Shown here one piece after another: positions 178 through 57,497 of a stretch of 64,000 nt of DNA; positions within the stretch are counted from its first letter, which is position 1, and each line of letters opens with the position of its first letter. The translations under genes were made by a program, and so were the position numbers. The notes under the pieces were generated by a model. It ran no database searches, was not told the DNA's origin, and saw only the letters and a program-made list of their open reading frames with translations. The stretch spans positions 62,001-126,000 of the IMG/VR virus record IMGVR_UViG_3300017991_000048; one strand, given 5' to 3'.

Positions 178-678
178 ATGCCCCAATGTAGACAATGCCG
201 CTGTGTTTACACCCACAAGGGTGTGACTTTTCTCGGACCAAATAGTAACATTCATTGGTGCTCATGGGTCTGTTATAACCTAGCCAGAGCCAACGCCGTC
301 ACCGAAAAGTGTGACGAATGCGGTAAGCATCTTCATAAGGGGCCTGCTTACATTTGCGAGACTCTCACAGGTGGTAATTACTTCCGGTGTGAGGCGTGTT
401 ATTCAGTTGCCGATCCAAACGAAATCCCGGAAGTCAAATGTTTTCGCGATCGAATGGTTCATGTGCGAATTAATGACAATGAGATGTTTTTCCGTTGCGA
501 TTCGTGCAACGGTTACGCCCCTCTTGAACGCCCTGTTTACTTTAGTCTCTACAACCATGGAACCTATTGTAGCCCTGTCTGTAGTCACAATAGTCATGGC
601 AAACAAGACCCTGAATCCGACAAGGATCTTTGGGGCCACCTAACAAAGGAGCCTGAACAATGTCAGAAGAAGAGTTAG
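178..678 (+). CDS. Multi zinc-finger protein (TRASH/FCS-like) with LWxHL tail
   Basis: Three CxxC...[WY]CSxxC-type units; DKDLWGHL near C-terminus. Confidence 0.65.
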   Translation: MPQCRQCRCVYTHKGVTFLGPNSNIHWCSWVCYNLARANAVTEKCDECGKHLHKGPAYICETLTGGNYFRCEACYSVADPNEIPEVKCFRDRMVHVRINDNEMFFRCDSCNGYAPLERPVYFSLYNHGTYCSPVCSHNSHGKQDPESDKDLWGHLTKEPEQCQKKS

Positions 679-896
679 AACCTTTTAAGTTAGGGCCTAC
701 CGGCGAGCACCCCAAGGGCAAGCTGCACGAAACTGATGAGGGTGAGATCCGATTGGGTGTAGCAAGCTATAAGGGCAATGTGGTTATCAACTTTGCGACA
801 CCTGTAGCTTGGCTCGCCATGACTCCTGCTGAGGCGATCCAGTTCGCTGAGGTGGTCAAGAACTGTGCCGTAAATATGAAGACACCGGAGAAGTGA
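660..896 (+). CDS. Hypothetical protein
   Basis: Clean ORF in operon, overlaps neighbours. Confidence 0.55.
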   Translation: MSEEELEPFKLGPTGEHPKGKLHETDEGEIRLGVASYKGNVVINFATPVAWLAMTPAEAIQFAEVVKNCAVNMKTPEK

Positions 897-1084
897 TGGA
901 TCATTTGCTAGCTCGAATAGGCACTATCGCTGTGCCAATAATTGGTGTTGCACTGTTATTGGTTGCTGGTTCCCTCGTTATGAAGATGTTTGGGCTGGCT
1001 CTTATGATGAGCATGTACTTTGCCGTTTATGAGATGGGCAAATATGACGGTATAAAACGGGCGGGACAGAGAAAAGGCGGTTGA
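893..1084 (+). CDS. Small membrane protein
   Basis: Two hydrophobic segments; GTGA/ATG overlap with upstream gene. Confidence 0.55.
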   Translation: MMDHLLARIGTIAVPIIGVALLLVAGSLVMKMFGLALMMSMYFAVYEMGKYDGIKRAGQRKGG

Positions 1085-1088
1085 CTGT

Positions 1089-1667
1089 ATGCCGTCAAAA
1101 AAGACCAAAGTAATAGTTCAAAAGACAGGTTCGACAAGCATTGGCTTTGGCAGCGCCCTGACCCTTATACTCATCACACTCAAGCTGACGGGCCACATTG
1201 ACTGGTCTTGGATTTGGGTTCTGTTTCCGTTTTGGCTCCCTGTAGCAGCCATGATCGGTCTGGCGTTAGGGGCCATTCTGATGGTTGCCCTGTTCGGTAC
1301 TGGCTTCATGGTGGTTGAGTTCTTCACAGAGCGACATGCCAAGAAAAAGCAAGACTCGCATGAACGATTGCATAGACAATTGCATGAGCAAAGACTAGAA
1401 ACCGAGAGGACGGCTCGACAACGGCACCAACGTTCACACGAGCGAAGGCTAGAGTACCCTTTACTCCGTGAAAGGGTACGAGGATTGAGAGCGGCACATG
1501 ATCTAGCCTTGTCTTTTTCTGGCGTTGAAGCTGATCTTGAAGCTGAGGAACAAAGGCTTGAGGCTGAGATACAAGAGCTTGAATCTCGTCTACAGGAAAA
1601 GAGTGACCCGCCAGAGGACAAACCGACAGAACCCGAACAGACTTTATGGGATCACCTGAAGGATTAA
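1089..1667 (+). CDS. Membrane + coiled-coil protein with LWDHL tail
   Basis: N-terminal GFGSALTLILITLKLTGHIDWSWIWVL phage membrane motif, heptad-rich C-half, ends QTLWDHLKD. Confidence 0.7.
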   Translation: MPSKKTKVIVQKTGSTSIGFGSALTLILITLKLTGHIDWSWIWVLFPFWLPVAAMIGLALGAILMVALFGTGFMVVEFFTERHAKKKQDSHERLHRQLHEQRLETERTARQRHQRSHERRLEYPLLRERVRGLRAAHDLALSFSGVEADLEAEEQRLEAEIQELESRLQEKSDPPEDKPTEPEQTLWDHLKD

Positions 1668-1669
1668 TC

Positions 1670-1906
1670 ATGCCCAACCCAATACTTGTACTGTCGCCAG
1701 AACCCGATTGTGCCTTATGCGAGGGCCAAGGGGTTCTTACCGATTCAGATTCAAAACTTCGCACAGAAGACGGAACCGATCTTGAAGTTACATACGTCTG
1801 CGAGTGTGTAAGCAGTGTGGATCTTTGGGAGTTACTGACAGATCGTATCAAAGACGGAACCGCTACTCGGAATCTTTTTGACCACCTGATACACGGAGAT
1901 GGCTAA
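1670..1906 (+). CDS. Small zinc-binding protein with two LWDH-like motifs
   Basis: CALC..CEC; DLWELL and NLFDHL; ATG at 1670. Confidence 0.6.
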   Translation: MPNPILVLSPEPDCALCEGQGVLTDSDSKLRTEDGTDLEVTYVCECVSSVDLWELLTDRIKDGTATRNLFDHLIHGDG

Positions 1907-2228
1907 CATGGAAAAAGTTAGACCCCTCGCAGAGATGTCCAGCCTTGAAGAGCAAATCTGGGCAGCAGCGTACATACAACAATTGACCAATCCGCCAATC
2001 CCAGACGGTCCGTGGCACAAACCTATACCATGCCAGAACATTGTGTATCACGATCATAGACCCACGGAGTACAAGGTAGAGGATGCTATTCAGACCGCCA
2101 ACTCTACCGTAGAGGACTTTCGTTCGGTTCAAAACCCCGTCTGTCGGGATTGCAGCAAAGACCTTGACGAAGATAATTCCATGAACGGTTACTGTCTCCG
2201 ATGCCATGAGAAGATTCAAAACCTATAA
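1899..2228 (+). CDS. Hypothetical protein (IWAxA family) with C-terminal zinc ribbon
   Basis: EEQIWAAAY..IQTANSTVEDFR resembles the repeats in 20417-20875; CRDC..CLRC. Confidence 0.55.
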   Translation: MANMEKVRPLAEMSSLEEQIWAAAYIQQLTNPPIPDGPWHKPIPCQNIVYHDHRPTEYKVEDAIQTANSTVEDFRSVQNPVCRDCSKDLDEDNSMNGYCLRCHEKIQNL

Positions 2229-2355
2229 CCCCTTGGAGGTTAAACAATGGAACTCACATATCTTGACCTGTTCCTGGAGGACGTTGGAAACAGACACAGA
2301 AAGTTGTATAGACTCTTCACAGAAGATGACACGGATGAAAACGACTCAGAAGAGA

Positions 2356-2658
2356 ATGAAATACTTCTACAAAAAAGTCCCTGACTTTAGGGAAGTGGCG
2401 ATTTCAAGGTATGCACAACGGCAAGCCGCAAAGGAAAGCGTCACCGATGATGAGGTTTATAATGCTTTGTGGCACGGGAAAAAGAGCCGCGTAAAAGGTG
2501 ACAAAAAGGCCGTTCACATTCGAGAGTATGGCGATGTTCGTCTTGAGGTCGTTGATCTAAGACAGACCAAAACTAGGGTCCATTATTCAGGGTACTTATA
2601 CATTGTTTCAACCATCCGACGAACCCGGACTTACAACCTTTGGGACCATTTAAGATGA
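2356..2658 (+). CDS. Hypothetical protein with LWDHL tail
   Basis: Ends YNLWDHLR; ATG at 2356 after AGAAGAG. Confidence 0.6.
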   Translation: MKYFYKKVPDFREVAISRYAQRQAAKESVTDDEVYNALWHGKKSRVKGDKKAVHIREYGDVRLEVVDLRQTKTRVHYSGYLYIVSTIRRTRTYNLWDHLR

Positions 2659-3236
2659 CTGTTGTCCGAGATACAGATGACCCAAACACTTTCTTGTGCC
2701 AGGATTGCGGTAATAACTTCTGTTATACGGACGGCAAAAAGCTGGTCAAGCATTTAGATGTCACCCCTTTGTGCCCTTTCTGCCACTCATCAGGAGAGAT
2801 AATGTCCGCCCCTAACACCTTTAATACCAACTATAACGGTACGGACACCACTGCTACGATCAATACTAATTCTGGTCTGACCATGCGCGAACGGCTAATC
2901 AAGCTTGAGTCCCAGTTTGAGCGGTATCGGGCGATTACCGCACGGGCATGTAATGTTCTTCGCGGGATTCGTGGGACAAGTGCGATAGATAAAGAAAAAG
3001 AGTTGCCCTCTGGCATGGTCGGACAACTATCGCATGAGTTATCTTTACTTCAGAGTGTTGAGTGGCGACCTACAAAGAGCTTCGCCACTTATGTAATCAC
3101 ACAATATTACAAAAGAGCCGCTGATTTTCAGGACGGTCTCAAGATCAAAAAAGATGTTGATGCTGTTTGGGAAGAGGCTCAAGAGTATTGGCCCGATCCC
3201 GGCCCTGGCCTTTGGGACACATTGCAGGAAAAATGA
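2655..3236 (+). CDS. Paralog family A member 1 (Zn ribbon + coiled coil + LxxExxxLxxxxWxP domain)
   Basis: LSHELSLLQSVEWRP..DAVW..GLWDTL. Confidence 0.7.
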   Translation: MTVVRDTDDPNTFLCQDCGNNFCYTDGKKLVKHLDVTPLCPFCHSSGEIMSAPNTFNTNYNGTDTTATINTNSGLTMRERLIKLESQFERYRAITARACNVLRGIRGTSAIDKEKELPSGMVGQLSHELSLLQSVEWRPTKSFATYVITQYYKRAADFQDGLKIKKDVDAVWEEAQEYWPDPGPGLWDTLQEK

Positions 3237-3535: not shown

Positions 3536-3537
3536 CT

Positions 3538-4140
3538 ATGTCTGTCACTCGTGTTTGGCATTTTGAAAATGCTTACCGTTGCGGTTCTTGCGGGGTCACC
3601 TTCGTGTATCAAGGGACAGCGGTGACACCTTCTTGCCCCAGTTGTACTGTGGTGGAGACTTCTGACGGTTATCACATAACAGAGAACGGATACTACATAC
3701 AAGAGAGCGATGATATCTCCAAAGAACGACTCATGGATCAGGTACTTGAGTTGGACAAGGAAGTGAAGAGCTTACATGAGGGGATATCAAGGTGGGCTGA
3801 GATCGCCAGAGAAGTAGCTCTTAAATTGCAAGAGTTACGAACAGAGTTGCCTTTGGGTGCCTCGTTAGAAGGGCACGAGGCCGACCGTAACACTTGGGCC
3901 GATGGGCATAAAGATTTCAATGCTTTGCAGTTTGAACATAGACTACTTCAGGAAGGCCGGTGGCAGAGCCCTCTTTTGGTACGCACCCTCATGCTCAAAG
4001 CTTACGGCAAAGCCGAGAGTTATGAAGAGGCTTGCGACATCAAGAAATATTTTGATAAAGCGTGGTCTGTTATTGAACAACGATGGGCTGAGAAAAAAGG
4101 GACAAACCTTTGGGATCACATCTCAGACGGGGATGAATGA
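3538..4140 (+). CDS. Paralog family A member 2
   Basis: CGSC..CPSC; LQFEHRLLQEGRWQS..DKAW..NLWDHI. Confidence 0.7.
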   Translation: MSVTRVWHFENAYRCGSCGVTFVYQGTAVTPSCPSCTVVETSDGYHITENGYYIQESDDISKERLMDQVLELDKEVKSLHEGISRWAEIAREVALKLQELRTELPLGASLEGHEADRNTWADGHKDFNALQFEHRLLQEGRWQSPLLVRTLMLKAYGKAESYEEACDIKKYFDKAWSVIEQRWAEKKGTNLWDHISDGDE

Positions 4141-4451
4141 TGCCCATAGAACGTGAATACTCACAAAGTGGAGTTCTTCTGTTTGTTTGTACAGACTGTC
4201 GGTTATCGTGGCCTGTGGAAGACAGCCCTGACCGTGACCCAGTTTGCCCTTATTGCTCCCCGGACGGCCCTTCCAAAATAACCAATGTGTTTTGCAGCAA
4301 CTGTGGTAAGAGAATTCGAGTCGGATGGTCCAAAAGTCTAAACTTTTGTGGTAAGAAGTGTCGTGATGCTCATTATCAGTCCATCAAAACTCCAATCGAA
4401 CGGGACCGGACCCTTTGGGACCATGTGAAGGGCGGTGAAGATGAGTGGTGA
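4137..4451 (+). CDS. Double zinc-finger protein with LWDHV tail
   Basis: CTDC..CPYC; CSNC..FCGKKC; RTLWDHVKG. Confidence 0.7.
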   Translation: MMPIEREYSQSGVLLFVCTDCRLSWPVEDSPDRDPVCPYCSPDGPSKITNVFCSNCGKRIRVGWSKSLNFCGKKCRDAHYQSIKTPIERDRTLWDHVKGGEDEW

Positions 4452-4905
4452 TCTTAGAAAATGTATTGAGTGCAACAAAGAGTTTGTTCCCACTATGCTC
4501 TCTTGTCCGATCTGCCAGTGTCAGAAAGAGGACAATATCGCCAAACGGCTTATGGAGCTTGAACTTACTGTGAAAGCCTTTCAGAAAACAGAGTGGGAGT
4601 TGAGGGGGTTGGTCAAAGAAGCGGCTGAAGAGATGCGGAGAAGGCGCGAAAGAAATCCTTCATACGCTATTACTTCACTTCCTTGGGCCGATGCTCTCCG
4701 TCTGGAACTGAAGTTTTTGAAAGAGAGTGAATGGGAACCTAATTTTGAACTTGTCCAGGCTCTTGTTTTGAAGTTTTACCAGAACGCTGAGGATTCTGCA
4801 CACGCCTATAGTCGTAAGAAGCGGCTAGATGAGCTTTGGGCTCAGGCTCAAAGTGAAAAGGTCAAAGGGCTGCCTACTTTATGGGATCACGTATCGAGGG
4901 AGTAG
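4441..4905 (+). CDS. Paralog family A member 3
   Basis: LRLELKFLKESEWEP..DELW..TLWDHV. Confidence 0.7.
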   Translation: MSGDLRKCIECNKEFVPTMLSCPICQCQKEDNIAKRLMELELTVKAFQKTEWELRGLVKEAAEEMRRRRERNPSYAITSLPWADALRLELKFLKESEWEPNFELVQALVLKFYQNAEDSAHAYSRKKRLDELWAQAQSEKVKGLPTLWDHVSRE

Positions 4906-5005
4906 TCTGGTGCCAGACACAGCCCCATATGACATCATTTTCATTTCCGTACTTTGGTTTGTCATAATGTCTGGCGCTATCTTCCAGTACCTGAAGGGTA
5001 AAACC

Positions 5006-5230: not shown

Positions 5231-5687
5231 GATAGACAAGCTAAATGCGGAGCTAGAAACCCGGAAACATATCCATCAAGTCAGAAAACTACTGCAAGAG
5301 ATGGTAGTTATGCTTCTGAAGCGAGGTGAAAACCATGACGCGACAAAGCTTGAGGCACCAGAAGCGGAAGGCTTTGCGGAGTACACCCCCAAGCTCGCAA
5401 CGTCAACCTACGGAAGCGACGAGTACAACCAATTTCTGAAAGACATGCAGCCGTTCCTTAAGTTCCATTATATGAAAAACTCGCACCATCCGGAGTTCTA
5501 CGAAAATGGCGTAGATGACATGAATTTGATAGATCTGATCGAGATGCTCTGTGACTGGAAAGCGGCAACACTGAGACACAATGACGGAGATATTCATAAG
5601 AGCATTGAACACAATGCCGATCGGTTCGGGTTGAGTCCTCAGATCGTTCATATATTCAGAAATACCGCCAAGAGCCTGGGATGGTAG
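5220..5687 (+). CDS. DUF5662-like phage protein (HD-like)
   Basis: HIHQV..HDATKL..TYGSDEY..HYMKNSHHPE..DLIEMLCDW pattern. Confidence 0.7.
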   Translation: MTSEIDKLNAELETRKHIHQVRKLLQEMVVMLLKRGENHDATKLEAPEAEGFAEYTPKLATSTYGSDEYNQFLKDMQPFLKFHYMKNSHHPEFYENGVDDMNLIDLIEMLCDWKAATLRHNDGDIHKSIEHNADRFGLSPQIVHIFRNTAKSLGW

Positions 5688-5947
5688 CTCAATACTCTTG
5701 TGACCATTGCAACCGGCCTATAAAGGGCACTGTTTACGTTGCATACGAAAATACTCTTCTTCGTTGGTGCAAACCAAGGTGTCGAGCCATCACACTTCGT
5801 CAGGCGGAGATTTGCGCCGATTGTTATAACTCAACCTGTGGGGGTCCAGAAACCTGTGTATCTCACCCTAAAAGAAATCTCTGGGACTATCTCAAAGGGC
5901 CAGACATAATGTATCAAGATTGGTACTCCTCTTTAAGAATTGATTAA
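5681..5947 (+). CDS. Zinc-finger protein with LWDYL motif
   Basis: CDHC..WCKPRC..CADC; RNLWDYLK. Confidence 0.6.
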   Translation: MVAQYSCDHCNRPIKGTVYVAYENTLLRWCKPRCRAITLRQAEICADCYNSTCGGPETCVSHPKRNLWDYLKGPDIMYQDWYSSLRID

Positions 5948-5974: not shown

Positions 5975-6460
5975 ATGTTAGTTTGCCCAGTTTGCAAAGC
6001 GGAATACCACGGTGGCAAGCCCGATGAAGCCGAAATGTTCATGCGTGGGCACAGGCATTGTGGAGAGGAGGCACGGGCGGAGGCCAAGAGAGAGATCCGG
6101 GAACAGCAGAGATTACTGGACGATCTTAATCGAGAATGCCGTCAAATGCGTAGCGGTTGTGAAGCGGTTATCGGGGAGCTACAGATGCTCCGTTTGGGGA
6201 AGCTTGATTCCTCTAGTTGGGAAGGCAAGAAACTGTTCGATGCTTTAGACTATGAGATACACTACCTGAAGTCTGGAAAGTGGCGACCCAACGGTGAGTT
6301 GCTCACGGAGATGGTGCGCCGGTACTTTATGGGGATAGCTTTTGAGGACGCTTTTGAGTTTCATAAAGCTCTTGCTGGTCTATGGGACGAACGTGTCCAG
6401 AGTGTAGAAGATAAAAACTCTACCTTATGGGAACATCTGAATCGAGACGGAGATGCCTAA
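5975..6460 (+). CDS. Paralog family A member 4
   Basis: LDYEIHYLKSGKWRP..GLW..STLWEHL; CGGTGTAGTAT-N6-ATG upstream. Confidence 0.7.
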   Translation: MLVCPVCKAEYHGGKPDEAEMFMRGHRHCGEEARAEAKREIREQQRLLDDLNRECRQMRSGCEAVIGELQMLRLGKLDSSSWEGKKLFDALDYEIHYLKSGKWRPNGELLTEMVRRYFMGIAFEDAFEFHKALAGLWDERVQSVEDKNSTLWEHLNRDGDA

Positions 6461-6728
6461 TTTCATATTCCGAGTGCCTGAAGACGGCTTCTTAGATGTC
6501 AAAACGTTTTTTAATGAAATCGAGGCGTCTCCAATTTCTGCGGCGATACATAAAGTCTCAGTCTACGAAGGAACTTGCACCTGTGCTTTTGGCAGACGTC
6601 TGAACAAAGCAGACACCAAAATAATGCAAGACTTAGTAACTGGGCACCAAGGTTTTGTTGAGACACCAAAGTATCCGATCGATGAAAGTAAAACCAAGGA
6701 TCTTTGGGAGCATCTGAAAAATGAGTAA
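6453..6728 (+). CDS. Hypothetical protein with LWEHL tail
   Basis: Ends [10 protein letters not shown]. Confidence 0.65.
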   Translation: MPNFIFRVPEDGFLDVKTFFNEIEASPISAAIHKVSVYEGTCTCAFGRRLNKADTKIMQDLVTGHQGFVETPKYPIDESKTKDLWEHLKNE

Positions 6729-7194
6729 AGCAAAAAACGTCCGAAGCCTTCAAAAGGTTATCGATAAACAAAATAAGGCTATCACAGAACTTGAGGACAA
6801 GATCGCAAGTCTTGAAATGCACCGTGACGCACGGTTTGCAAAGTTCGAAGATGAGAACCGGAAGCTCCATATTGTCGGCAGAGCATTGATTACCGCAATG
6901 AAAAGAATGAGGAAGGTAAGGCATGACGAGCCAAGTCTTAACTCTCCCTTAGAAGAGGAACTGAGCTACGAGTTAGAATGCTTGAGAGAAGGGCGTTGGT
7001 TGCCTGATTTCAAAAGGCTCATGGATTATCTTGAGGCGCATTATATAGAAGCCGAAGGCTTTGGGGAAGCTGTGTCTTTGCACCAAAGCCTTGAGGACTT
7101 GTGGGAGAAGATCCAGCAGCAATGGTGGGGCGGTGAAATCGAGGGGCTAACTACCCTTTGGGAATATTTAACAGACGAGAATGAAAATGACTGA
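6721..7194 (+). CDS. Paralog family A member 5
   Basis: [26 protein letters not shown]. Confidence 0.7.
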
Positions 7195-7968: not shown

Positions 7969-7972
7969 GAGG

Positions 7973-8308
7973 ATGTACCAGTGTGCTGTATGCAAACGTC
8001 AGGTTAATGGTGTTATCCCCTGGTCACAACCAACTGTTGATACCGTTATCTGTTCCCGTGCGTGTCACAACAGAAGCTTGAACCTGTGTGCTCGTTGCGA
8101 TCAACCTATGCCTGACCCGCCTTATAGACGTTGGAACTATCACCAGAGGTACTGCTCTATCGAGTGCAGGGCTGAGGGCACGAATTGGGCCTCGTGTACC
8201 GAGTGTAATAATGACCTTTGCGCCCCACCTTGTGACTACTTTTTTACTAATAGCAAGCCGCTGTGGGCTTATCTACGGGACAGTGATGACCCCTTGCCAG
8301 CATTGTAG
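7973..8308 (+). CDS. Triple zinc-finger (TRASH/FCS-like) protein with LWAYL tail
   Basis: CAVC..ICSRAC; CARC..YCSIEC; KPLWAYLRD. Confidence 0.65.
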   Translation: MYQCAVCKRQVNGVIPWSQPTVDTVICSRACHNRSLNLCARCDQPMPDPPYRRWNYHQRYCSIECRAEGTNWASCTECNNDLCAPPCDYFFTNSKPLWAYLRDSDDPLPAL

Positions 8309-8588
8309 CGCGGACCAACCGGATGCAACCCCTGTGATTAGGGAAGGGGATTTACGGTTCTGTACTCATTATTGTCATAGAAAATGGATGGAAGAATACC
8401 ACCGGCTCATTGCTAGAAAGGCCGTATACAACCCGTTGCCGGTACTTCAAGGTTGTAAATGCTTTTGTGGTGGGCCACTTCGACCAATTACAAAAGCTTG
8501 CCGCCACGAAGATCCCGATCAGTATTACTGTCTTACTTGCGGTTCGATACACGACCATAAAACCTTTTGGGACCACATTCAGGAGTAA
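8286..8588 (+). CDS. Zinc-finger protein with FWDHI tail
   Basis: ATG at 8286; CQHC..FCTHYC; CFC..CLTC; KTFWDHIQE. Confidence 0.65.
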   Translation: MTPCQHCSADQPDATPVIREGDLRFCTHYCHRKWMEEYHRLIARKAVYNPLPVLQGCKCFCGGPLRPITKACRHEDPDQYYCLTCGSIHDHKTFWDHIQE

Positions 8589-8851: not shown

Positions 8852-9328
8852 ATGGCACCCTGGACCCCTTCGACTCCCACTGCACCCCTAAGCAACGCCT
8901 GGACCGTAACCACTACTGCCAGCACTGATTACGCCACCGGGAGCGATGCTACGGCTATTATTACCACCTATTCACATCCTATCCCGACTCAATCTGATAA
9001 AGAGGTAGAGCTTGAGCGTAAGCTTAACAGGCATCGTGAGGCTTGCCATGACGCTATTGAGTTACTTCGTTGTGTTCGTCAGACGACAAGGGGAATCCGA
9101 CCGGACAATACGCCAGAGGCGTTGCAAGATGAAGTGAAACTCTTTCAAGACGGCGATTGGCAACCTACGGCACGGTTTGTAGCCACCGTTTTGCTCAAAT
9201 ATTACCTGAGTGGCGGGACTCTCAAGAAGGCTATCAAGCGGAGAGAACTGGCAGATGCCGTTTGGAATCAGGTTCTTGAGCAATTGGCTCCGGACGCCAC
9301 TCTTTGGGAATCTTTACGGGATGAATAA
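8852..9328 (+). CDS. Paralog family A member 6
   Basis: LQDEVKLFQDGDWQP..DAVW..ATLWESL; AGGAG RBS. Confidence 0.7.
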   Translation: MAPWTPSTPTAPLSNAWTVTTTASTDYATGSDATAIITTYSHPIPTQSDKEVELERKLNRHREACHDAIELLRCVRQTTRGIRPDNTPEALQDEVKLFQDGDWQPTARFVATVLLKYYLSGGTLKKAIKRRELADAVWNQVLEQLAPDATLWESLRDE

Positions 9329-9941: not shown

Positions 9942-10093
9942 ATCACTGTCAGCAGACGGTCGCACCAAAACTTACCCCAGATAGCCGACGTCTGTAGCCA
10001 AAAAGCTGTAATTTTGTTGCACATACCTAAGGTTTCGTATGGCAAAAAAAGTCAAAAAAGTCAAATCACTGTCAGCAGACGGTCGCACCAAAA
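9942..10093 (+). repeat. 29-bp perfect direct repeat (9942-9970 and 10065-10093)
   Basis: ATCACTGTCAGCAGACGGTCGCACCAAAA occurs twice, once intergenic and once in the 5' end of CDS 10039. Confidence 0.9.
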
Positions 10094-10548
10094 AGAAGGT
10101 GATAAGAACCATTGAGGATGAGATCAGATATCTTGTCGATAAAGACGTTCACATTTACATCGATGATAGGAAAACCAAAGATTTGCAGGAACAATTGAAG
10201 CACGAACGTCAGCAAGTGCTTGTGCTGGAAACTTCTATTTTGGAGTACAAGAGAGTTTGCGCTGAAGCGGCTGTGGAGTTTAGAAGCTATCGCCGGGGTG
10301 CAAAAAATAGAGAGTTCTCAGATGAATTAGCAGAGCTACAATATGAGTTGGGTGCATTGAAAAAACCCAACTGGCGTCCCACCGTGTTGTTTGCCAAGTT
10401 TGTGGTTTCAAAATACTTCAAGACGGCAAAGAGTCTGGGAGAAGCTTCTAAGCTTAGGAAAAAGCTCGATGAAGTGTGGGACAAAGCTCAGGAAGAGTGG
10501 ACCACTTTCGGTCCACATACGCTTTGGGAAGCGGTAAGAGATAACTGA
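10039..10548 (+). CDS. Paralog family A member 7
   Basis: LQYELGALKKPNWRP..DEVW..HTLWEAV. Confidence 0.7.
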   Translation: MAKKVKKVKSLSADGRTKKKVIRTIEDEIRYLVDKDVHIYIDDRKTKDLQEQLKHERQQVLVLETSILEYKRVCAEAAVEFRSYRRGAKNREFSDELAELQYELGALKKPNWRPTVLFAKFVVSKYFKTAKSLGEASKLRKKLDEVWDKAQEEWTTFGPHTLWEAVRDN

Positions 10549-11159
10549 TGTCTAAGCGACTCCTTCAAGTAATAAACTTTGTTCCGATGGTGATATGGGC
10601 ATTGGCGGCTGTGGCTGCTTACGTCATCAACTTCGAGGACAAGACGGTTTGGTCAACTGGCCTTTTTACTCTATGTGCTGTCACACTAAGCATTCTTTAT
10701 ACTATTAAAACGGAAAGCCCCTCAAAGCAGGAGCCTGAGGGCCGTTGTAATGAGTGTCACCGGGAAATCCGTTTAAGTGACCCGGCCACCCGATCGTTTG
10801 TTACATGCGCGTCTCCGCATGGCACTCCCTACGGCAGCGAGACTATCTACCTATGCCGCCGTCATTGTCGTACTCAATATCTTGCCAAACTTTTACAGGT
10901 TGCGGATTCCATAACCGAACCTAGAGATGATTTAGATTATTTACGACAACGGACGCCGCCGCATCCGGTATTACCTCCGATACCTCCTCCCCTTACCCGG
11001 CCAGGACGGGTAATGAACGATCTTTACGGTGAGAACTATCTAGAGCACATGGAAGAATTGGAGCGGCAATACGGCGACTTGAAGCATATGGAAGGCGAGC
11101 CTCAAGAAGGTGAACCCGAAGGGCCTGAAAAGGATCTCTGGGATTACGTCAAAGGATAG
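10548..11159 (+). CDS. Membrane protein + zinc finger with LWDYV tail
   Basis: Two TM segments, CNEC..LCRRHC, Pro-rich linker, ends KDLWDYVKG. Confidence 0.65.
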   Translation: MSKRLLQVINFVPMVIWALAAVAAYVINFEDKTVWSTGLFTLCAVTLSILYTIKTESPSKQEPEGRCNECHREIRLSDPATRSFVTCASPHGTPYGSETIYLCRRHCRTQYLAKLLQVADSITEPRDDLDYLRQRTPPHPVLPPIPPPLTRPGRVMNDLYGENYLEHMEELERQYGDLKHMEGEPQEGEPEGPEKDLWDYVKG

Positions 11160-12392: not shown

Positions 12393-12623
12393 TCAATCTT
12401 CAGGGTAGTACCCAACAATTTCCAGTAGCTGAAAAGCCAACTCAGGAAGTGCGTTGTTCACGTTGTCCTGTTGCAGGAGACTTTCAGCACAGCTTGGCCG
12501 GTGCTCATTTCGCCATTCTTCTATAATTTTGTGGAGTTTTCGCAATTCTTGAAGCTCTTTGGTTCTTTGTTCTAGTAGCTGTCGAGTGCCGATTAGTTCT
12601 TTGTGCATGGCTGATTCAAACAT
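12393..12623 (-). CDS. Coiled-coil hypothetical protein
   Basis: ATG at 12623 overlaps upstream stop. Confidence 0.45.
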   Translation of the reverse strand: MFESAMHKELIGTRQLLEQRTKELQELRKLHKIIEEWRNEHRPSCAESLLQQDNVNNALPELAFQLLEIVGYYPED

Positions 12624-13227
12624 TTGGATCTCCTGGTTCTCCTGCTGGTCCTGTCGAACAATATGGCGATCCAACTGGACCTGTCGGTGGCCCAGTTGGG
12701 CCTGTAGCTCCGATGCAGGCCGATATTGTGATCCCGGCTTCACGGCAAATATCTAGGATTTGCCTTTGTTCTGGCGTCTCATATACGAATGCAGAACCGT
12801 CTCCTCTTATAACCCTTTCGTCTGCTAGAAGCGAGATTCTACGAAACATATCTTGAAATCGATCGTGGTCTTGTTGGCGTTGCATTGCCAAACGCCACAT
12901 TTTTGCAGGTATTCTGTATTGGAACCCCTCTTCGTGTGGGTCACTGCTACTGACACATTGGATGTCGTAAAGTGGGTATTCAACCCCGTGTTCCGCGACG
13001 ACAATGTAAGTTGCTTCGTCGATTTCAAGAGCTTGATTCATGGGATCGGGATCGTGTGGCTCTTGCACATGCTCCCATAGGGTCTTATTAGGCCCGACCT
13101 CTCTGGCTTCGATATCGACTGGTTTAACACACTGAGGGCAGAATCGCCTGCTTATGGAATCGTCCATTCCGGTGCCGCCGCATGTCTCACATTTAGGGTC
13201 TGTTGTCAGGACTCGCATTCTGGTCAT
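12616..13227 (-). CDS. Zn-finger + internal LWEHV + GATGP-rich tail protein
   Basis: CETCGGTG..CPQC; KTLWEHVQ at residue ~50; GATGPTGP..GEPGDP. Confidence 0.6.
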   Translation of the reverse strand: MTRMRVLTTDPKCETCGGTGMDDSISRRFCPQCVKPVDIEAREVGPNKTLWEHVQEPHDPDPMNQALEIDEATYIVVAEHGVEYPLYDIQCVSSSDPHEEGFQYRIPAKMWRLAMQRQQDHDRFQDMFRRISLLADERVIRGDGSAFVYETPEQRQILDICREAGITISACIGATGPTGPPTGPVGSPYCSTGPAGEPGDPNV

Positions 13228-13475
13228 TCTCTAAGATGCTCCCATAAAGTCTTGGTATTGCTGCGTTTTGAACCATAGTAGCAGTCCGTTCGGCAAACGG
13301 GTCTATTACAGTTTACACATTTAAGCCCCGTTCTATTGAGACTTTCAGCCCTGCACTCCGTTGAGCACCAAAGAGCGTCAGACCACAGGCGTTTTTCAAA
13401 AAACTGTCCAGTTTGCCACCGGAAATAGGTTTTTTCAGGCGGGATTTCTTTACCACACTGGCAGTACTTTGACAT
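13224..13475 (-). CDS. Zinc-finger protein with LWEHL tail
   Basis: CQC..WCSTEC; CVNC..C; ends KTLWEHLRE. Confidence 0.7.
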   Translation of the reverse strand: MSKYCQCGKEIPPEKTYFRWQTGQFFEKRLWSDALWCSTECRAESLNRTGLKCVNCNRPVCRTDCYYGSKRSNTKTLWEHLRE

Positions 13476-13807: not shown

Positions 13808-14158
13808 TTAGGCTTTTTCCAAGACATGATCCCAGAGAGTTTTGTGTCCAAAAGTCTGTCGCATTTTCTTTACACTACCGAAGCCCAGAATGATCCAGTT
13901 GTCTTTACAGTCTGAGCAAATCGTATCTTCCATCGGAATGTCGGTAAAACGGCGGTATAGGTGATGTTCGCCGCAAGCGCAGACCAGACAGAGTAAAGTT
14001 ATCTCATTAATGTCCGTGTACCCCACCATGTTAGGCCAGTTATCAACATCAATGTTGGCGTCGGCAAAGTACTGTCTCAGATTGTCCCGGCGCTCTTCTT
14101 TGGTGTCTCCAATAAGAACCAGGGGAACATTCACTTGCTTGTATTTAGAAAGGGGCAT
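13808..14158 (-). CDS. Zinc-ribbon protein with LWDHV tail
   Basis: CACG..CSDC; ends KTLWDHVLEKA. Confidence 0.65.
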   Translation of the reverse strand: MPLSKYKQVNVPLVLIGDTKEERRDNLRQYFADANIDVDNWPNMVGYTDINEITLLCLVCACGEHHLYRRFTDIPMEDTICSDCKDNWIILGFGSVKKMRQTFGHKTLWDHVLEKA

Positions 14159-14402
14159 CGGGGTCTACGTTTTTCCACCAAACTTCAAAATCATCTCTCA
14201 CATGATCCCAAAATGTTATCGTCGAATAGTTCATAACTCCAAATTCAAATGAGCGCTCTCTGCATACAGACGAACACCAAAACCCTGGCCTAATTTTTAG
14301 GCGTGTTGAAAAGAGCCTGTCGATCATGTCTCCTGTCATGTCGTAAGCCCGGAGCCCATTCTCGTCTTTTGTGTGCTTGGCGCACCAGTCACAACGAGGC
14401 AT
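14145..14402 (-). CDS. Zinc-finger protein with FWDHV motif
   Basis: CDWC..WCSSVC; ITFWDHVRD. Confidence 0.65.
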   Translation of the reverse strand: MPRCDWCAKHTKDENGLRAYDMTGDMIDRLFSTRLKIRPGFWCSSVCRERSFEFGVMNYSTITFWDHVRDDFEVWWKNVDPDAPF

Positions 14403-16942: not shown

Positions 16943-17272
16943 TCAACTGTTGTTTCTTGGCGGTCTTTGACCCTCTACCCAGGCGACAATCCGTTGACCC
17001 TCTTCTCTGGTGAACTGGTTTTGTTGGTTCTTTGTGAATCTTTCTGCGACTACCTCTCGGAAAGCTTTTTGACCGTCGTCAGTGATAATCAGGCCAATTG
17101 TTGCCGGGGATAATGCAAGAACTGTTACCACATCCCACAAAGTTATATGTGGTTTTGTTTCCTTCAGATCTTTTCTGCCCACAACCCTTAGAAACTCGAA
17201 GTGTAGGGACGCTGACGTATACATGAGGGCTATGAACGATGCTGCCCAGTATGCAATTAGTACGTGAACCAT
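16943..17272 (-). CDS. Membrane protein
   Basis: Start MVHVL at 17272; hydrophobic segments; TLWDVV internal. Confidence 0.4.
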   Translation of the reverse strand: MVHVLIAYWAASFIALMYTSASLHFEFLRVVGRKDLKETKPHITLWDVVTVLALSPATIGLIITDDGQKAFREVVAERFTKNQQNQFTREEGQRIVAWVEGQRPPRNNS

Positions 17273-40535: not shown

Positions 40536-41120
40536 TCATTCTTTCAGGTGGTCATACAGTGTGAGAACAGGGGAGCCGCACTTGAAACACCGGAGCCTTA
40601 CCTCAGCTTTTGAAGACCCGGCGACAATAGTTTTGGAATGATCACAGCCTGGGAGAGCCGAAATCGCGTTTTGGATATCTTCTTCGGTCGCATCTGTGAT
40701 ACTTTTATCCGGACGCAATACCCTAAACACTGACCGTTCGCTCTCTAAGTATAAAACAGGTATATTGATCAGCGGGTAATTCAGTGTTACCGGCTTTGCG
40801 AGGGGCGAGTACCCTTCCAATATAAGGGTGAATCTTTCAACGGTTACAAGCGTTCCCATTGGACTACGGGCCTGTACAATGGCTTTTGAGTCTGGTTCGG
40901 TTACGTGGATAGTGTCTTCTGCGGTTATAAAATCACCCTCGCAGACAACCTGCCCTTCAAAAAGAACGCGAATTGCTGGTTTGATTGGCTCAAAGCTCTC
41001 AACCCCAACCTGTAAATAGTAAGGACCGGGCGGAACATCGAATGGGGCCACAATAAGAACATCAACCCACGTGGTAGAAGTCGTGGAAAAAACCACATCG
41101 GTTTCCGCTAGTCGCCGCAT
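40536..41120 (-). CDS. Hypothetical protein with LYDHL tail
   Basis: Motif-N6-ATG start; CDH..CFKC; ends LTLYDHLKE. Confidence 0.65.
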   Translation of the reverse strand: MRRLAETDVVFSTTSTTWVDVLIVAPFDVPPGPYYLQVGVESFEPIKPAIRVLFEGQVVCEGDFITAEDTIHVTEPDSKAIVQARSPMGTLVTVERFTLILEGYSPLAKPVTLNYPLINIPVLYLESERSVFRVLRPDKSITDATEEDIQNAISALPGCDHSKTIVAGSSKAEVRLRCFKCGSPVLTLYDHLKE

Positions 41121-41179: not shown

Positions 41180-41677
41180 ATGATTGTCAATTTGCTTGGG
41201 CCACAGGTAGTTGTTCATCCCTATGCCGACCAGGGACGGGAAACTATTAGCGTTCTGGCATATGACACCCGTCAAAGTGTTGTCGGAATGTATGACGGCC
41301 TAGTTTATGAAGAAAGGGTACGGACTGAGGAGGAGCTTGGTTGGAACACAGAAATACGAGAATTCCCATACTTTGATAAATTGGATGATCACTGTATTAT
41401 TGTGGATGACATCATACGCACAAATATAGTGCTAAACGGAGGGCCGCGTATTTTTAGATGCCACCACGAATGGCGAGAGGCTGAAGCACGAAGAGACCCA
41501 GATAGCAAAGTCATATCAGGCAATCAGAGGGCCGTTACACTTAAGCTACAAGACGGAATGCTTGCCGTCCAGGAGGGTAATAAGAAACGCACTACCATTA
41601 TTGTTATGGATCTCGCTCTCGAACTCGAACTCAAGAATCCTGAAGAGCAAGACCTTTGGGATCATTTAGTCTCTTGA
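41180..41677 (+). CDS. Hypothetical protein with LWDHL tail
   Basis: Motif-N6-ATG start; ends QDLWDHLVS. Confidence 0.65.
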   Translation: MIVNLLGPQVVVHPYADQGRETISVLAYDTRQSVVGMYDGLVYEERVRTEEELGWNTEIREFPYFDKLDDHCIIVDDIIRTNIVLNGGPRIFRCHHEWREAEARRDPDSKVISGNQRAVTLKLQDGMLAVQEGNKKRTTIIVMDLALELELKNPEEQDLWDHLVS

Positions 41678-41688: not shown

Positions 41689-42054
41689 ATGGGCGAACTT
41701 ATTAAGATTGAAGACTGGCAAAGACCCATTCGGATAGGGGTAGCGGAGCCGGGAAAGTTCACCGTTCAAGGCGAACCTGTTGTTATCGCCCCCAAAATCG
41801 TGAGCCTCAGGTGTCTTGAGTGTGGAAAGACATTGGCGTCCATAGATGCGAAAATGGACTTTACGGACTTACCACCAAACCTACATGCCCTTTTCGTCAA
41901 CATGCTCATGCAAACGGGGGAACATAGTGACTGCCCAAAGACACTCAAAAAACCGAAATTGGTTCATTCATCAAAAGAGAAACCAACAAAATGGGCAAAG
42001 TTTATAGGCTGGTTACGTAGGCTAGTTGCTCTACGAAGATCCGTGGTGAGATAA
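41689..42054 (+). CDS. Zinc-binding hypothetical protein
   Basis: CLEC..HSDC. Confidence 0.5.
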   Translation: MGELIKIEDWQRPIRIGVAEPGKFTVQGEPVVIAPKIVSLRCLECGKTLASIDAKMDFTDLPPNLHALFVNMLMQTGEHSDCPKTLKKPKLVHSSKEKPTKWAKFIGWLRRLVALRRSVVR

Positions 42055-42494
42055 TGCCGACTTTCGATCTCACTGCTGATCAACACGCTGCGCTGAAAGC
42101 TCTTAGGTGGCTTTATGACGGTTCTGAAGATCAGCGGAGGACAGGGCGTTCGACTGTATTGGCCCTGAGTTATCTTCACCGGCTGCTTGTGAATCCGGGC
42201 CAATGGATTTCAATACACGATCACCATCTGACACGCATGTCTGGCGAATTTCTAGGTGGCATTATTATACGGTTGGCGAAGGAAGCTGGCATACGTAGTG
42301 AAAGCATCGAGCGACGACAATATACGGGGCTGGAGCTACGTTTCAGCCAACACAGCCATGTCTCTCGTCAGACATGGGCTGCACTTACCACGTTCGGACT
42401 TTTGGATAAGATACCAGGGGACTTACGAGAGCCGCCTGACATTGACTTGACAGAGACTACGCTCTGGGATCATTTGTCAGCAGACGGTGATTAG
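42054..42494 (+). CDS. Hypothetical protein with LWDHL tail
   Basis: RRTGRST (degenerate P-loop-like); ends TTLWDHLSADGD. Confidence 0.6.
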   Translation: MPTFDLTADQHAALKALRWLYDGSEDQRRTGRSTVLALSYLHRLLVNPGQWISIHDHHLTRMSGEFLGGIIIRLAKEAGIRSESIERRQYTGLELRFSQHSHVSRQTWAALTTFGLLDKIPGDLREPPDIDLTETTLWDHLSADGD

Positions 42495-55938: not shown

Positions 55939-55976
55939 AGCCTACTCTTACACCGAAAAGGATTAAAGTCTAGTAT

Positions 55977-56351
55977 TTATCGTCGGGAACGATACTCCCG
56001 TACCGGCCCACGTCGTGTGCGGTTCCGGGGCCGTTCTTCCCTCCGAAGATCTTCCCCCTCAAGCTGAATGACCACCCTTCGGTGGTCCAGTCCCGCAGCC
56101 TTTTCAAACAGGTGCATTATGGCGTCAAGCGTTCTATGCTCCCGGCCAATAACTTGACCCCTGTCAGAAGGGTCTACTGTCACGGTTAGAACGGTAGTAC
56201 CCCGGCCTTTGGCGCTGTGGACAGACACTTTTTCGGGGCTGCGAACAATAGAGCGAACAAGTTCTAAAAGTAGTTCGGATTCTTCTAAAATGATTCCGTC
56301 AGAATCGGTATTTGGAGGTGTTTGTGAGTCTCTCATCGTCTGGATTGACAT
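55977..56351 (-). CDS. khpA: KhpA (UPF0109) KH-domain RNA-binding protein
   Basis: LVRSIVRSPEKVSV..VDPSDRGQVIGREHRTLDAI. Confidence 0.8.
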   Translation of the reverse strand: MSIQTMRDSQTPPNTDSDGIILEESELLLELVRSIVRSPEKVSVHSAKGRGTTVLTVTVDPSDRGQVIGREHRTLDAIMHLFEKAAGLDHRRVVIQLEGEDLRREERPRNRTRRGPVREYRSRR

Positions 56352-56736
56352 CTTCTGTTCCCTTGGAGTACCTCTTTCGGTAACTTGGGCGACGTGTTAT
56401 CGCCAACTGTTTACCAGCAGTAAGGTTAATAGGTTTGTGGGTTAAATGTTGGATACGCCTTTTTATACTTCGTATGTTATACCCGTGTGTAGTTAAGTAA
56501 TCATACCATTCATTGAGCGGTATATCTCTTTTGGCAGAGTTACAAGGTCTACAACAGGTAACTAGGTTTTCAGGGTAGTTGCCTTTTGTCGAATCGAGAT
56601 GGTCCAAAGTCAAACCGTAGCCCAATGGATCAATAGGAAACACCCCTCTGCACCACACACAATCGAATGAATCTCGGACATAAATTGCCAAGCGCTTGGG
56701 CAGCTTAATCCAATCCATACCTTTGTTATGTGGCAT
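56299..56736 (-). CDS. HNH endonuclease
   Basis: RDSFDCVWC..LTLDH..NLVTCCRPCNSAK. Confidence 0.85.
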   Translation of the reverse strand: MPHNKGMDWIKLPKRLAIYVRDSFDCVWCRGVFPIDPLGYGLTLDHLDSTKGNYPENLVTCCRPCNSAKRDIPLNEWYDYLTTHGYNIRSIKRRIQHLTHKPINLTAGKQLAITRRPSYRKRYSKGTEDVNPDDERLTNTSKYRF

Positions 56737-56760
56737 ATCAGTTAGGATTTTATAAGCTCT

Positions 56761-57069
56761 CTATTTCGACTTCTTCTTTTTCCGCCCCATTTGTGCGAGC
56801 CCCAAAAATATAGGCTCCGATTCTTCGGCTCTGGCTGCTCTTTCCAACTCGCGAACGTGGCTTCGGCAGTCTTCACAAAGAGTACTGGGTGTTCCATCTT
56901 TCTTTTTACGAGCCTTGTTGCCGCAACGGGAACACAGGCCCTTCTTCTTTCGTCCAGCCCGGTACTCAGCCATCTTTTTTCGTTGGTGTTCTAAATGATG
57001 TTTACAGAGACGTTTGCCTTTATGTACAACACGCCCACAACCAAAAGCACAAAGTTTCTTTTCTGTCAT
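56761..57069 (-). CDS. Basic zinc-finger protein
   Basis: CAFGC..CKHH; CSRC..CEDC. Confidence 0.55.
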   Translation of the reverse strand: MTEKKLCAFGCGRVVHKGKRLCKHHLEHQRKKMAEYRAGRKKKGLCSRCGNKARKKKDGTPSTLCEDCRSHVRELERAARAEESEPIFLGLAQMGRKKKKSK

Positions 57070-57497
57070 TGTAATATATCGTTGTCGTTAGTTAAATGCT
57101 CAAATATAGTTTTGATTTTCTCTGGACCCTCTTGCAATTCTTTATCCGAATAAAACGGCCCCTCGATCGATACATCAACGCCTGCCAACTCTTCATCGAT
57201 CATCTCTCGCGCTTCCTCGTAAGTTGCAATCTCTTTATAGTACAGAGTTCCCGATCGAGGGTACGAGATCTTCCAGTAAGCATTGGGCTCTGAAAGCAAC
57301 TCACATTCCTCGTATACAGCCAAGTTCTCTACATCTTCATGCACTATGAGATAGGTATCTCCCAAGTACTCCATGACCAGCCCCGGAGTGTCAGGGCGGC
57401 GAGCATCTTGATTGCCTTTAGGGGCGATGAAGGCATGGTTCTCCAGCAACGAGGATGTGGTTCTTACCGTGCTCTTCTTTGGAAAGCGCTTACGCAT
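57066..57497 (-). CDS. Hypothetical protein with IFEHL tail variant
   Basis: Ends KTIFEHLTNDNDILQ. Confidence 0.55.
   Translation of the reverse strand: MRKRFPKKSTVRTTSSLLENHAFIAPKGNQDARRPDTPGLVMEYLGDTYLIVHEDVENLAVYEECELLSEPNAYWKISYPRSGTLYYKEIATYEEAREMIDEELAGVDVSIEGPFYSDKELQEGPEKIKTIFEHLTNDNDILQ

Follow-up and report, generated by a model that had tools for sequence, protein, structure and literature searches.

We analysed a stretch of 64,000 nucleotides (hereafter the window) that covers positions 62,001-126,000 of IMG/VR contig 3300017991_000048 (= Ga0180434_10000003), a sequence of 398,071 bp from an uncultured phage. Roughly one in four small genes of the window ends in a common nine-residue peptide, [KR]-[TN]-L-W-D-H-L-[KR]-[DE], which we call the tag and which is the subject of this work. 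The source is a megaphage (~398 kb), a tailed-phage-like virus of a prokaryote. The same genes recur at shifted coordinates in an independent ENA assembly of 397,921 bp, which suggests that the genome is circularly permuted and hence complete. The window has a guanine + cytosine (GC) content of 47.7%, and its genes are small, tightly packed and operonic, with starts and stops that often overlap. Upstream of starts, the tetramers AGGA, AAGG and GGAG show a 3-4 fold enrichment, and these Shine-Dalgarno-like leaders, together with the overlapping operonic genes, indicate a prokaryotic host. Genes were called with a crude home-made caller, which leaves start codons uncertain and distances to stop codons reliable. 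The source genome was read over 128 kb of its ~398 kb.

Frequency, position and consensus of the tag

A six-frame translation of the window contains 20 matches to the strict pattern LW[DE]H[LVI], against a mean of 0.07 in 200 codon-block shuffles, and 16 of these 20 sites lie at most 10 residues from a stop codon (0.025 expected from the same number of shuffles). A looser pattern, [LFI][WYF][DE][HY][LVI], gives 33 sites where 1.5 are expected. The tag is far beyond chance, and the C-terminal motif reported in the initial annotation is real. In all, about 34 open reading frames (ORFs) of the window are tagged (Table 1). Sixteen of them stand in an array on the plus strand (178-11159), including the degenerate ends DLWGHL (178-678), GLWDTL, TLWESL, TLWEAV and NLFDHL; ten stand in an array on the minus strand (13224-19799), beside which one more, internal copy lies in 12616-13227. 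Together with the C-terminal copies at 40536, 41180, 42054 and 57066, the last of them weak, these numbers leave the earlier counts of 17, 10 and 4 about right.

We then pooled the unique sites of the source and of a second tag-rich phage, described below, as collected with the pattern [LFI][WY][DE][HY][LVI]. Among these 72 sites, 63 have 10 residues or fewer after the motif, where a fraction of 0.107 would be expected (binomial ~3e-51). The tail after the tag measures 1-4 residues in 46 of the 72 sites, most commonly 2-3 and never 0; it ranges from 1 to about 10 residues, none of them conserved beyond [KR][DE]. Internal tags make up ~10% of the copies. The pooled consensus is [KR]-[TNDS]-L-W-[DE]-H-[LVI]-[KR]-[DE], so that the motif is longer than the [TND]-L-W-[DE]-H-[LVI] first proposed. 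The first Leu is found in 93% of the sites, Trp in 94% and His in 94%; T, N, D or S occupies position -1 in 90%, and K or R position -2 in 53%. The acidic residue (D/E) and the last hydrophobic residue (L/V/I) both reach 100%, a value fixed by the collecting pattern. As an outside control, we considered 264 loci in other viruses, metagenomes and genomes that match the DNA pattern by chance. Of 140 in-frame cases, just 7 have the match close to a C-terminus, and at least three of those seven are relatives of the source phage.

Selection on the peptide

The initial annotation held that selection acts on the peptide, and the codons bear this out. The first Leu uses all six codons (CTT 13, CTC 6, TTA 4, CTA 3, CTG 2, TTG 1), His uses CAC and CAT 12 times each, and Asp and Glu use all four of theirs. 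At the D, E, H and K positions of the tag, codons vary as they do in the genome (p 0.5-0.9). Substitutions are conservative, with Trp replaced by Tyr, Leu by Phe, and Leu, Val and Ile interchanged. In a small zinc-knuckle family common to both phages, the tags are kept with different synonymous codons. Selection thus acts on the tag peptide.

We considered nonetheless that the tag might be a signal in the nucleic acid, serving translational coupling, masking of the next Shine-Dalgarno sequence or microhomology for cassette shuffling, or else an ancestral relic. The tag lies 5-30 nt before the next start, and the [KR][DE] pair that comes next is encoded by AAG GAx, AGG GAx or AGA GAx, codons that resemble a Shine-Dalgarno sequence and in many cases stand 5-12 nt ahead of the following ATG; because of this resemblance, positions +1/+2 of the tag may be doubly constrained. 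The third codon position is biased to pyrimidine at position -1 and at the first Leu (codons -1 and 0; p 0.001-0.02), and the common 9-nt core TGGGAYCAY could act as microhomology. Against such a signal, conservation has a period of three and follows amino-acid type (L to F, W to Y, and L/V/I as NTN), the codons for D, E, H and K are chosen as elsewhere in the genome, and the tag is retained at phage GC contents of 38-59% and where no gene follows closely. Neither the pyrimidine bias nor the Shine-Dalgarno overlap accounts for the motif, and in view of the codon statistics we rejected an explanation at the level of RNA. As to a relic, pure common descent is excluded because tagged bodies are homologous to untagged families. 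A nucleic-acid signal or relic is the least probable of the explanations that we weighed.

Architecture of the tagged proteins

The family of window ORF 42054-42494 shows how the tag is attached. Its 17 homologues, from different contigs and 34-56% identical, consist of a conserved domain of ~115 residues, then a Pro-rich linker of ~8 to ~60 residues with no conserved position, and finally T-L-W-[DE]-H-L with an acidic end, in which T and W are invariant. Pairwise orthologues at 30-38% identity likewise keep the tag behind linkers that differ in length and sequence. Linker composition is shifted towards P, K and E and away from hydrophobic residues. The module consists of a flexible P/K/E-rich linker, the nine-residue tag, and up to about 8 further residues before the stop.

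AlphaFold2 models agree with this arrangement. For the 42054-42494 protein, modelled from the alignment of the 17 homologues, the domain reaches a predicted local confidence score (pLDDT) of 80-93, the linker (residues 119-133) stays below 50, and the tag forms a six-residue helix at 137-142 with a pLDDT of ~52. A member of the paralogous family A described below (4441-4905) was modelled as a zinc ribbon plus a helical bundle, a break at 142-146, and a tag helix at 147-152 (pLDDT ~60). Neither model predicts the tag to be packed on the body. As modelled, the first Leu, the Trp and the last L/V/I would share one face of the helix, and the preceding T, N, D or S, all classic helix N-cap residues, would cap it. 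A fold search of both models against the PDB returned nothing below E 0.3: the family A model matched isolated zinc ribbons only, and the 42054-42494 model gave only weak winged-helix-like matches.

The notion of a short linear motif (SLiM) appended to different bodies is thus supported by the tag kept among orthologues, by the disordered linker in the models, and by the coexistence of tagged and untagged members in one family (see below); on the alignments, the tag appears to be a linear peptide that is retained while bodies and linkers turn over. It does not belong to a longer domain already known. When 33 tagged proteins were compared with Pfam-A, PHROGs and NCBIfam, no model covered the tag and no family reached the cut-off, the only matches of that scan being weak zinc-ribbon or treble-clef matches to the bodies. 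A profile of 74 tags found no PDB sequence at E<=10, and a search of 8.4 million papers gave no relevant occurrence of the motif string. Searches on jumbo-phage motifs and phage SLiMs, including a 2026 jumbo-phage review, found no similar shared C-terminal tag, in line with the earlier remark that no described phage system with it was known.

The bodies that carry the tag

The tag is portable between bodies. The initial annotation called these bodies unrelated, which stands for the 53 of 81 that are BLASTP singletons; it does not stand for family A, with at least 16 members in the genome, and about one third of the tagged proteins share two or more CxxC-type pairs, many as CxxC...[FWY]C[ST]xxC. 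These zinc-finger bodies have weak treble-clef matches to TRASH, L24e, NinG and DUF2116, and the Cys content of tagged proteins is 3.4% against 1.2% in untagged ones. When the 81 bodies were compared phage against phage, BLASTP gave no match at E<1e-3; the zinc-knuckle family that the two phages have in common was detected outside that comparison.

Family A has seven members in the window. They combine a coiled coil and a helical domain with, in some, a zinc ribbon, and show a second tag-like helix (xDxxW[DE]) ~20 residues upstream of the tag. A hidden Markov model of the family, searched against 1.84 billion representatives, retrieved only the source phage and one 1.2-kb fragment from the same project, and a word-indexed search with the family profile returned the window's own proteins only.

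Transmembrane (TM) segments are present in ~10% of the tagged proteins. The tag lies C-terminal to them, after zinc fingers or coiled coils, an order that would place it on the cytoplasmic side; this argument comes from the order of the domains and not from a topology prediction.

Two further cases illustrate the portability of the tag. One family is mixed: its member at 2206-2658 is tagged and its relative in sequence L180 of the second phage ends in the degenerate SLWHAV, whereas the members at window 15611-15871 and L180 5011-5268 are untagged. In ORF 1089-1667 (192 residues), the N-terminal 85 residues match the 89-residue profile phrog_1374 at 3.5e-20, and ~105 residues comprising a coiled coil, a linker and the tag lie beyond this match.

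The proteins of the mixed family start with YYxDVPxxGxVALSxHAQ and form paralogues in both phages (window 2206-2658 and 15611-15871; L180 1425-1697 and 5011-5268), each phage having one copy tagged, fully or degenerately, and one untagged. To us they presumably resemble DUF4258 toxin-like proteins, an impression from their sequence alone. We also noted two mini-proteins with tag-like sequence at both the N- and the C-terminus, of 80 residues in the window (18722-18964, minus strand) and of 58 residues in the second phage (L180 3880-4056). With a small Cys cluster between their tags, they could be bivalent linkers or competitors for a receptor.

The functions that can be recognised in the untagged ORFs of the window are accessory ones, namely patatin, NADAR, SpoU methylase, PolX, RRM, KH domain, PTH2, sulfotransferase, amidase, J-domain and nucleases (Pfam). 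None of the ORFs with an enzyme domain in this untagged set appears in the list of tag sites of the window, and the earlier observation that enzymes lack the tag holds.

Table 1. Tagged open reading frames of the window. Coordinates are window positions; "ends" gives the residues up to the stop codon. TM, transmembrane.
Feature	Position	Strand	Sequence or remark
Cys-rich ORF, degenerate tag	178..678	+	ends KDLWGHLTKEPEQCQKKS (DLWGHL variant)
2-3 TM segments, coiled coil, tag 1644-1658	1089..1667	+	ends QTLWDHLKD
Degenerate tag 1874-1888, upstream LWELL	1646..1906	+	ends NLFDHLIHGDG
Member of mixed tagged/untagged family, tag 2638-2652	2206..2658	+	ends NLWDHLR
Family A paralogue, degenerate tag 3210-3224	2655..3236	+	ends GLWDTLQEK
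Family A paralogue, tag 4108-4122	3538..4140	+	ends NLWDHISDGDE
Zinc-finger ORF, tag 4413-4427	4137..4451	+	ends TLWDHVKGGEDEW
Family A paralogue, tag 4879-4893	4441..4905	+	AlphaFold2-modelled
Zinc-finger ORF, tag 5879-5893, 17-residue tail	5681..5947	+	contains NLWDYLKG...
Family A paralogue, tag 6425-6439	5975..6460	+	ends TLWEHLNRDGDA
Tagged ORF, tag 6702-6716	6453..6728	+	ends DLWEHLKNE
Family A paralogue, tag 7156-7170, upstream LWEKI	6721..7194	+	
Zinc-finger ORF, tag 8565-8579	8088..8588	+	ends TFWDHIQE
Family A paralogue, degenerate tag 9302-9316	8852..9328	+	ends TLWESLRDE
Family A paralogue, degenerate tag 10522-10536	10039..10548	+	ends TLWEAVRDN
2 TM segments, zinc finger, Pro/Glu-rich linker, tag 11136-11150	10548..11159	+	ends EGPEKDLWDYVKG
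Internal tag 13066-13080 between zinc ribbon and 149-residue C-terminal part	12616..13227	-	contains KTLWEHVQEP...
Zinc-finger ORF, tag 13233-13247	13224..13475	-	ends KTLWEHLRE
Tagged ORF, tag 13823-13837	13808..14158	-	ends KTLWDHVLEKA
Zinc-finger ORF, tag 14199-14213, 17-residue tail	14145..14402	-	contains TFWDHVRDD...
Tag 41 residues before stop (17383-17397)	17257..17529	-	contains KNLWDHLREEE...
1 TM segment, zinc finger, tag 17534-17548	17522..17929	-	ends KDLWEHLEND
Zinc-finger ORF, tag 17946-17960	17919..18302	-	ends KILWDHVTEVPKNGS
Zinc-finger ORF, tag 18307-18321	18295..18720	-	ends KNLWDHVKDA
80-residue ORF, tag-like sequence at both ends	18722..18964	-	starts MDQSNKNLWQHLRG, ends ALWDCLRE
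60-residue ORF, tag 19161-19175	19149..19331	-	ends RTLWDHLRET
N-terminal TM segment, coiled coil, Pro/Glu-rich linker, tag 19347-19361	19338..19799	-	ends VTLWEHLKD
Internal tag 20681-20695, then 59 residues	20417..20875	+	contains KNLWDHVIDPE...
Internal tag 24055-24069, then 61 residues with zinc ribbon	23917..24255	+	contains NNLWDHLLGKE...
Variant tag 23 residues before stop (29449-29463)	29377..29859	-	contains PNLYDHVKDD...
Variant tag 40545-40559	40536..41120	-	ends LTLYDHLKE
Tag 41654-41668, kept in distant relative	41180..41677	+	ends QDLWDHLVS
Family conserved across clade, tag 42462-42476	42054..42494	+	
Weak, doubtful variant (IFEHL) without Trp, 57093-57107; counted uncertain	57066..57497	-	ends KTIFEHLTNDNDILQ

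Distribution in related phages

We scanned IMG/VR, JGI/ENA metagenomes and 185,579 species genomes with degenerate DNA patterns of the tag. Dense arrays were found in two phages only. The 128 kb read of the source hold 50 C-terminal and 8 internal tags. Their density peaks at 13-14 per 10 kb at 50-70 kb of the contig and is high over 50-80 kb, and no tag occurs at 127-144 kb, a region with RNase HII, a methyltransferase and topoisomerase IB. The tags are thus concentrated in arrays of accessory genes, and the genome-wide distribution initially envisaged is not supported. The second phage (416 kb, IMG/VR 3300028840_002431, also represented by contigs of 173, 84 and 33 kb; GC ~55%) has 32 C-terminal and 2 internal tags in ~33 kb. 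Almost no recognisable proteins are common to the tag regions of the two.

In more distant relatives the tags are sparser, at 1-3 per 17-20 kb. Three are present in a 116-kb IMG/VR contig and its variant L205 (GC 57-58%), including tagged orthologues of 42054-42494 (38% identity) and of 41180-41677 (30%), the latter ending RTLWDLLAD in L205. Two tags were found in the 39-kb contig L296, one or two in the 82-kb contig L297, and one in L195 (GC 38%). L275 also bears one tag; this contig encodes an AAA_33 protein of 55% identity and has the promoter-like element described below in seven copies.

Mimicry of a host peptide was considered and rejected. The 185,579 species genomes gave 56 single, chance-like matches, of which one of 26 in-frame cases lies near a C-terminus, and this sole case is the L275 phage fragment in a metagenome-assembled genome (MAG) of the Pirellulales. 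No tagged cellular protein family was seen in these genomes at this sensitivity.

A promoter-like element, TCGGTGTAAT, occurs 22 times in the window with at most one mismatch, where 3.2 are expected. Its sites include 151-160, 9885-9894, 13481-13490, 14410-14419 (minus strand), 15593-15602, 19808-19817 (minus), 19841-19850, 20402-20411, 23107-23116 (minus), 41129-41138 (minus), 41162-41171 and 49991-50000 (minus), among others. Start codons follow it at a distance of 2-20 nt, and it stands at the head of tagged arrays as well as of untagged genes. The element is present in the 416-kb phage and, seven times, in L275 as CCGGTGTAATA-N7-8-ATG; it is absent from the more distant relatives. It is probably a clade-specific promoter that gives very short leaders and near-leaderless mRNAs.

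Gene context and possible host

The phage has no cultured relative that we could find: 44 kb of the window had no megablast match among 50,697 phage records, tblastn with a 448-residue protein found none either, and PolX gave remote matches only. A cluster of three tRNA genes lies at 30477-31092, and these are the only Rfam RNA matches. ARAGORN gives the middle one (30617-30693; Rfam tRNA score 51.7 bits) a four-base anticodon, 'tccg', with no amino-acid assignment. Eukaryote- or archaea-like Pfam matches occur in the source at 124-144 kb of the contig (L232) and at 26-56 kb (L227/L231), among them a 955-residue protein with a type IB topoisomerase domain, a PTH2-type peptidyl-tRNA hydrolase, and RRM and KH proteins. 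Fainter matches concern a Myb-like protein of 286 residues and a sigma-70 region-4-like protein of 396 residues that adjoins tagged genes.

Two observations bear on the host. L275 (contig CAZTKW010000138.1) is a 7.7-kb fragment of a related phage that was binned with an uncultured Pirellulales (Planctomycetes) MAG; this binning may be a weak lead to the host, with mis-binning as the alternative. The source metagenomes also contain Planctomycetes MAGs of GC 48-49.5% (PMC7449369), which may likewise be a weak lead.

Candidate receptors

We examined several candidate genes for a reader of the tag in the 128 kb of the source and in the relatives. A BCS1-type AAA+ ATPase, with BCS1_N, AAA and lid domains and an N-terminal TM segment, is encoded at L205 4847-6121, adjoining the conserved tagged gene, and at L296 16538-17401, 9 kb away from it. 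Over 2,700 homologues were counted in metagenomes; the best 120 include none from the 398-kb or 416-kb contig, and a role as general receptor is hence not supported.

Two J-domain proteins with HPD motifs are encoded in the source, one of 142 residues at window 62917-63345 (minus strand) and one of 97 residues at L227 11218-11511 (contig ~44.6 kb). Nothing ties them to the tags, and we rejected J-domain proteins and DnaK as receptor; DnaK disfavours an acidic residue such as the one that interrupts the hydrophobic core of the tag. We also rejected the idea that internal-tag proteins carry a built-in receptor in their C-terminal parts, as these have no paralogues in the sequence examined.

The ClpX C4-type zinc finger reads adaptor tails. 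A 183-residue protein of L297 (14213-14764, minus strand) has a precomputed match to this finger, and no homologue of it was found in the 128 kb of the source.

Possible function of the tag

Our preferred explanation, which we put forward tentatively and by analogy with known systems, is that the tag is an address, that is, a sorting or loading signal. A single cytoplasmic receptor would recognise the short linear motif on many finished proteins after translation, and the label would hand over these fast-evolving, effector-like small proteins to one destination or machine specific to the phage clade. Candidates for this destination would be the virion interior, an assembly or compartment built by the phage, or a translocating or unfolding machine, and co-injection may be envisaged; the logic would be that of the T4 capsid targeting sequence (CTS), of encapsulin targeting peptides and of peroxisomal targeting signal 1 (PTS1). 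Spelled out in full, as a clade-specific addressing code in which one receptor reads a nine-residue label and so directs dozens of hypervariable small zinc-finger, coiled-coil and membrane proteins to a single destination or machine, the proposal is still more tentative. Elsewhere in biology, strictly terminal and strongly conserved tags on dozens of unrelated proteins are mostly sorting signals. Moreover, the reader would be contested by at least 58 proteins, many of them made from one and the same promoter-like element, and would then have to be an abundant lattice or a catalytic machine; a low-copy regulatory hub would be swamped. It is this competition argument, together with the general behaviour of terminal tags, that leads us to rank sorting above hub recruitment and degradation. 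Family A, a large set of fast-diverging paralogues with the pattern of an arms race, also favours an address.

Several points weigh against the address. No receptor was found among the candidate genes above. Loading into a capsid or protein shell would hardly suit those tagged proteins that have TM segments, and the tagged set lacks the basic character of the T4 internal proteins. The promoter-like motif of the tagged arrays also heads many untagged genes, so that the arrays do not stand out as a temporal class of their own. Import into a DNA-containing compartment is argued against by the DNA-handling enzymes of the window, which lack the tag. Finally, the argument from stoichiometry is reasoning, not data.

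The tagged proteins might instead be adaptors, as the initial annotation preferred: each variable body would bind a different host or defence target, and the constant tag would recruit to it one effector such as a host or phage AAA+ protease, a chaperone or a nuclease, much as F-box or PRANC proteins do, or the SspB tail on ClpX. Variable bodies on a constant tail and fast-diverging paralogues would fit an arms race of this kind too, and a terminal peptide behind a long disordered linker is also the architecture of SspB, the SSB tail and the FtsZ C-terminal peptide; the phage also has its two J-domain proteins, and one relative the protein with the ClpX-type zinc finger. Yet no protease, adaptor or receptor gene was linked to the tags in the sequence examined, the best 120 homologues of the BCS1-like ATPase of the two relatives include none on the tag-rich contigs, and by eye the tag is unlike the known ClpX, SspB, ssrA, beta-clamp and PCNA-interacting peptide (PIP) sequences. 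We regard recruitment to a hub as unlikely, and a degron, which would let a host or phage protease remove accessory proteins at a set time and thereby end early functions as the infection proceeds, as more unlikely again. The tag is terminal, exposed and unstructured in the models, sits on soluble and membrane proteins alike, and is missing from stable enzymes, all of which would suit a degron. However, six to seven defined positions with an invariant W and a near-invariant H exceed the specificity of known bacterial degrons; the distance to the C-terminus varies from 1 to ~10 residues, which argues against a reading of the alpha-carboxylate; copies also occur internally and at the N-terminus; and literature searches found no phage precedent for global turnover directed by a tag.

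A purely structural role, in which the helix folds back on the body or tagged proteins bind each other for co-assembly or auto-inhibition, seems to us very improbable. The second tag-like helix of family A and the two-tag mini-proteins, which could cross-link, would be explained by it, but bodies of such diversity can hardly offer a common docking surface, the AlphaFold2 helix is not packed confidently (pLDDT 50-60), and linkers of up to ~60 disordered residues look like a tether and not like part of a fold.

Whichever of these functions applies, the peptide offers a handle on the ORFans that make up most of the genes of huge phages; it groups more than 90 of them in two phages, as well as a conserved family in the more distant relatives, into a single class. 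Should the tag serve for sorting or loading, it would represent the first address code of proteome scale to be described for viruses of prokaryotes, a counterpart in a prokaryotic cell of PTS1, a nuclear localisation signal or a secretion signal, and a ready-made cargo tag. If it recruits or degrades, it would mean that phages use SLiMs to manipulate the host at a scale known mainly from eukaryotic viruses.

Comparison with known systems

The CTS of phage T4, found on IPI, IPII, IPIII and Alt and cut off by the prohead protease, is like the tag the sole common element of otherwise diverse small phage proteins. It is N-terminal, measures ~10 residues and binds the scaffolding core, whereas the tag is C-terminal and unrelated in sequence. 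It is present on a handful of proteins, while the tag is on dozens, membrane proteins included. In T-even phages, this common peptide belongs to diverse, fast-evolving small internal proteins, several of them directed against host defence, and it carries foreign proteins as well (PMC3012670).

The targeting peptides of family-1 encapsulins and of microcompartments share with the tag their C-terminal position and short length behind a flexible linker. The encapsulin shell protein has the HK97 capsid fold. Encapsulin cargo carries transferable C-terminal targeting peptides that dock in a hydrophobic pocket of the shell protein (PMC7925596). Their consensus, LGI...K or GSL, is extended (DGSLGIGSLKG, PMC7925596), in contrast to [KR][TN]LWDHL[KR][DE] with its predicted helix. 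Encapsulins have one or a few cargo types beside the shell gene; here no shell gene was seen near the tags, and the Pfam matches in the 128 kb of the ~398-kb source named none.

The XB tail of SspB, the SSB tip, the C-terminal peptide of FtsZ and the beta-clamp motif have the same plan of body, disordered linker and terminal peptide, with one pocket that binds it. In SSB and FtsZ, however, one family has the tail and many partners, and the clamp serves ~10 replication proteins, compared with at least 58 proteins of one virus here. By eye, we take the tag to be distinct from QL[SD]LF, DDDIPF, LRVVK and DIPxFL. A beta-clamp or PIP motif (QL[SD]LF, Qxx[LIM]xx[FY][FY]) does not describe it, there being no conserved Q and the aromatic residue following directly on the first Leu; nor does an ssrA-like ClpXP degron (LAA-COOH), given the 1 to ~10 variable residues after the tag.

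The PRANC/F-box of poxvirus ankyrin proteins is, like the tag, a constant C-terminal module on expanded, variable paralogues of a large virus. It is a folded unit of ~40-50 residues that binds Skp1 in eukaryotic hosts, as opposed to a nine-residue peptide in a virus of a prokaryote, and conservation of the tag spans just ~9 residues behind a disordered linker. The pattern of the LC3-interacting region or Atg8-interacting motif (LIR/AIM), [EDST].{0,2}[WFY]xx[ILV], fits T-L-W-D-H-L-K-D; but the host is prokaryotic by its gene organisation, no Atg8 is expected, and we therefore consider the match a coincidence with a loose pattern. Shared terminal peptides for docking or targeting are known in principle; the sequence of the tag, the scale on which it is used and its viral context are new.

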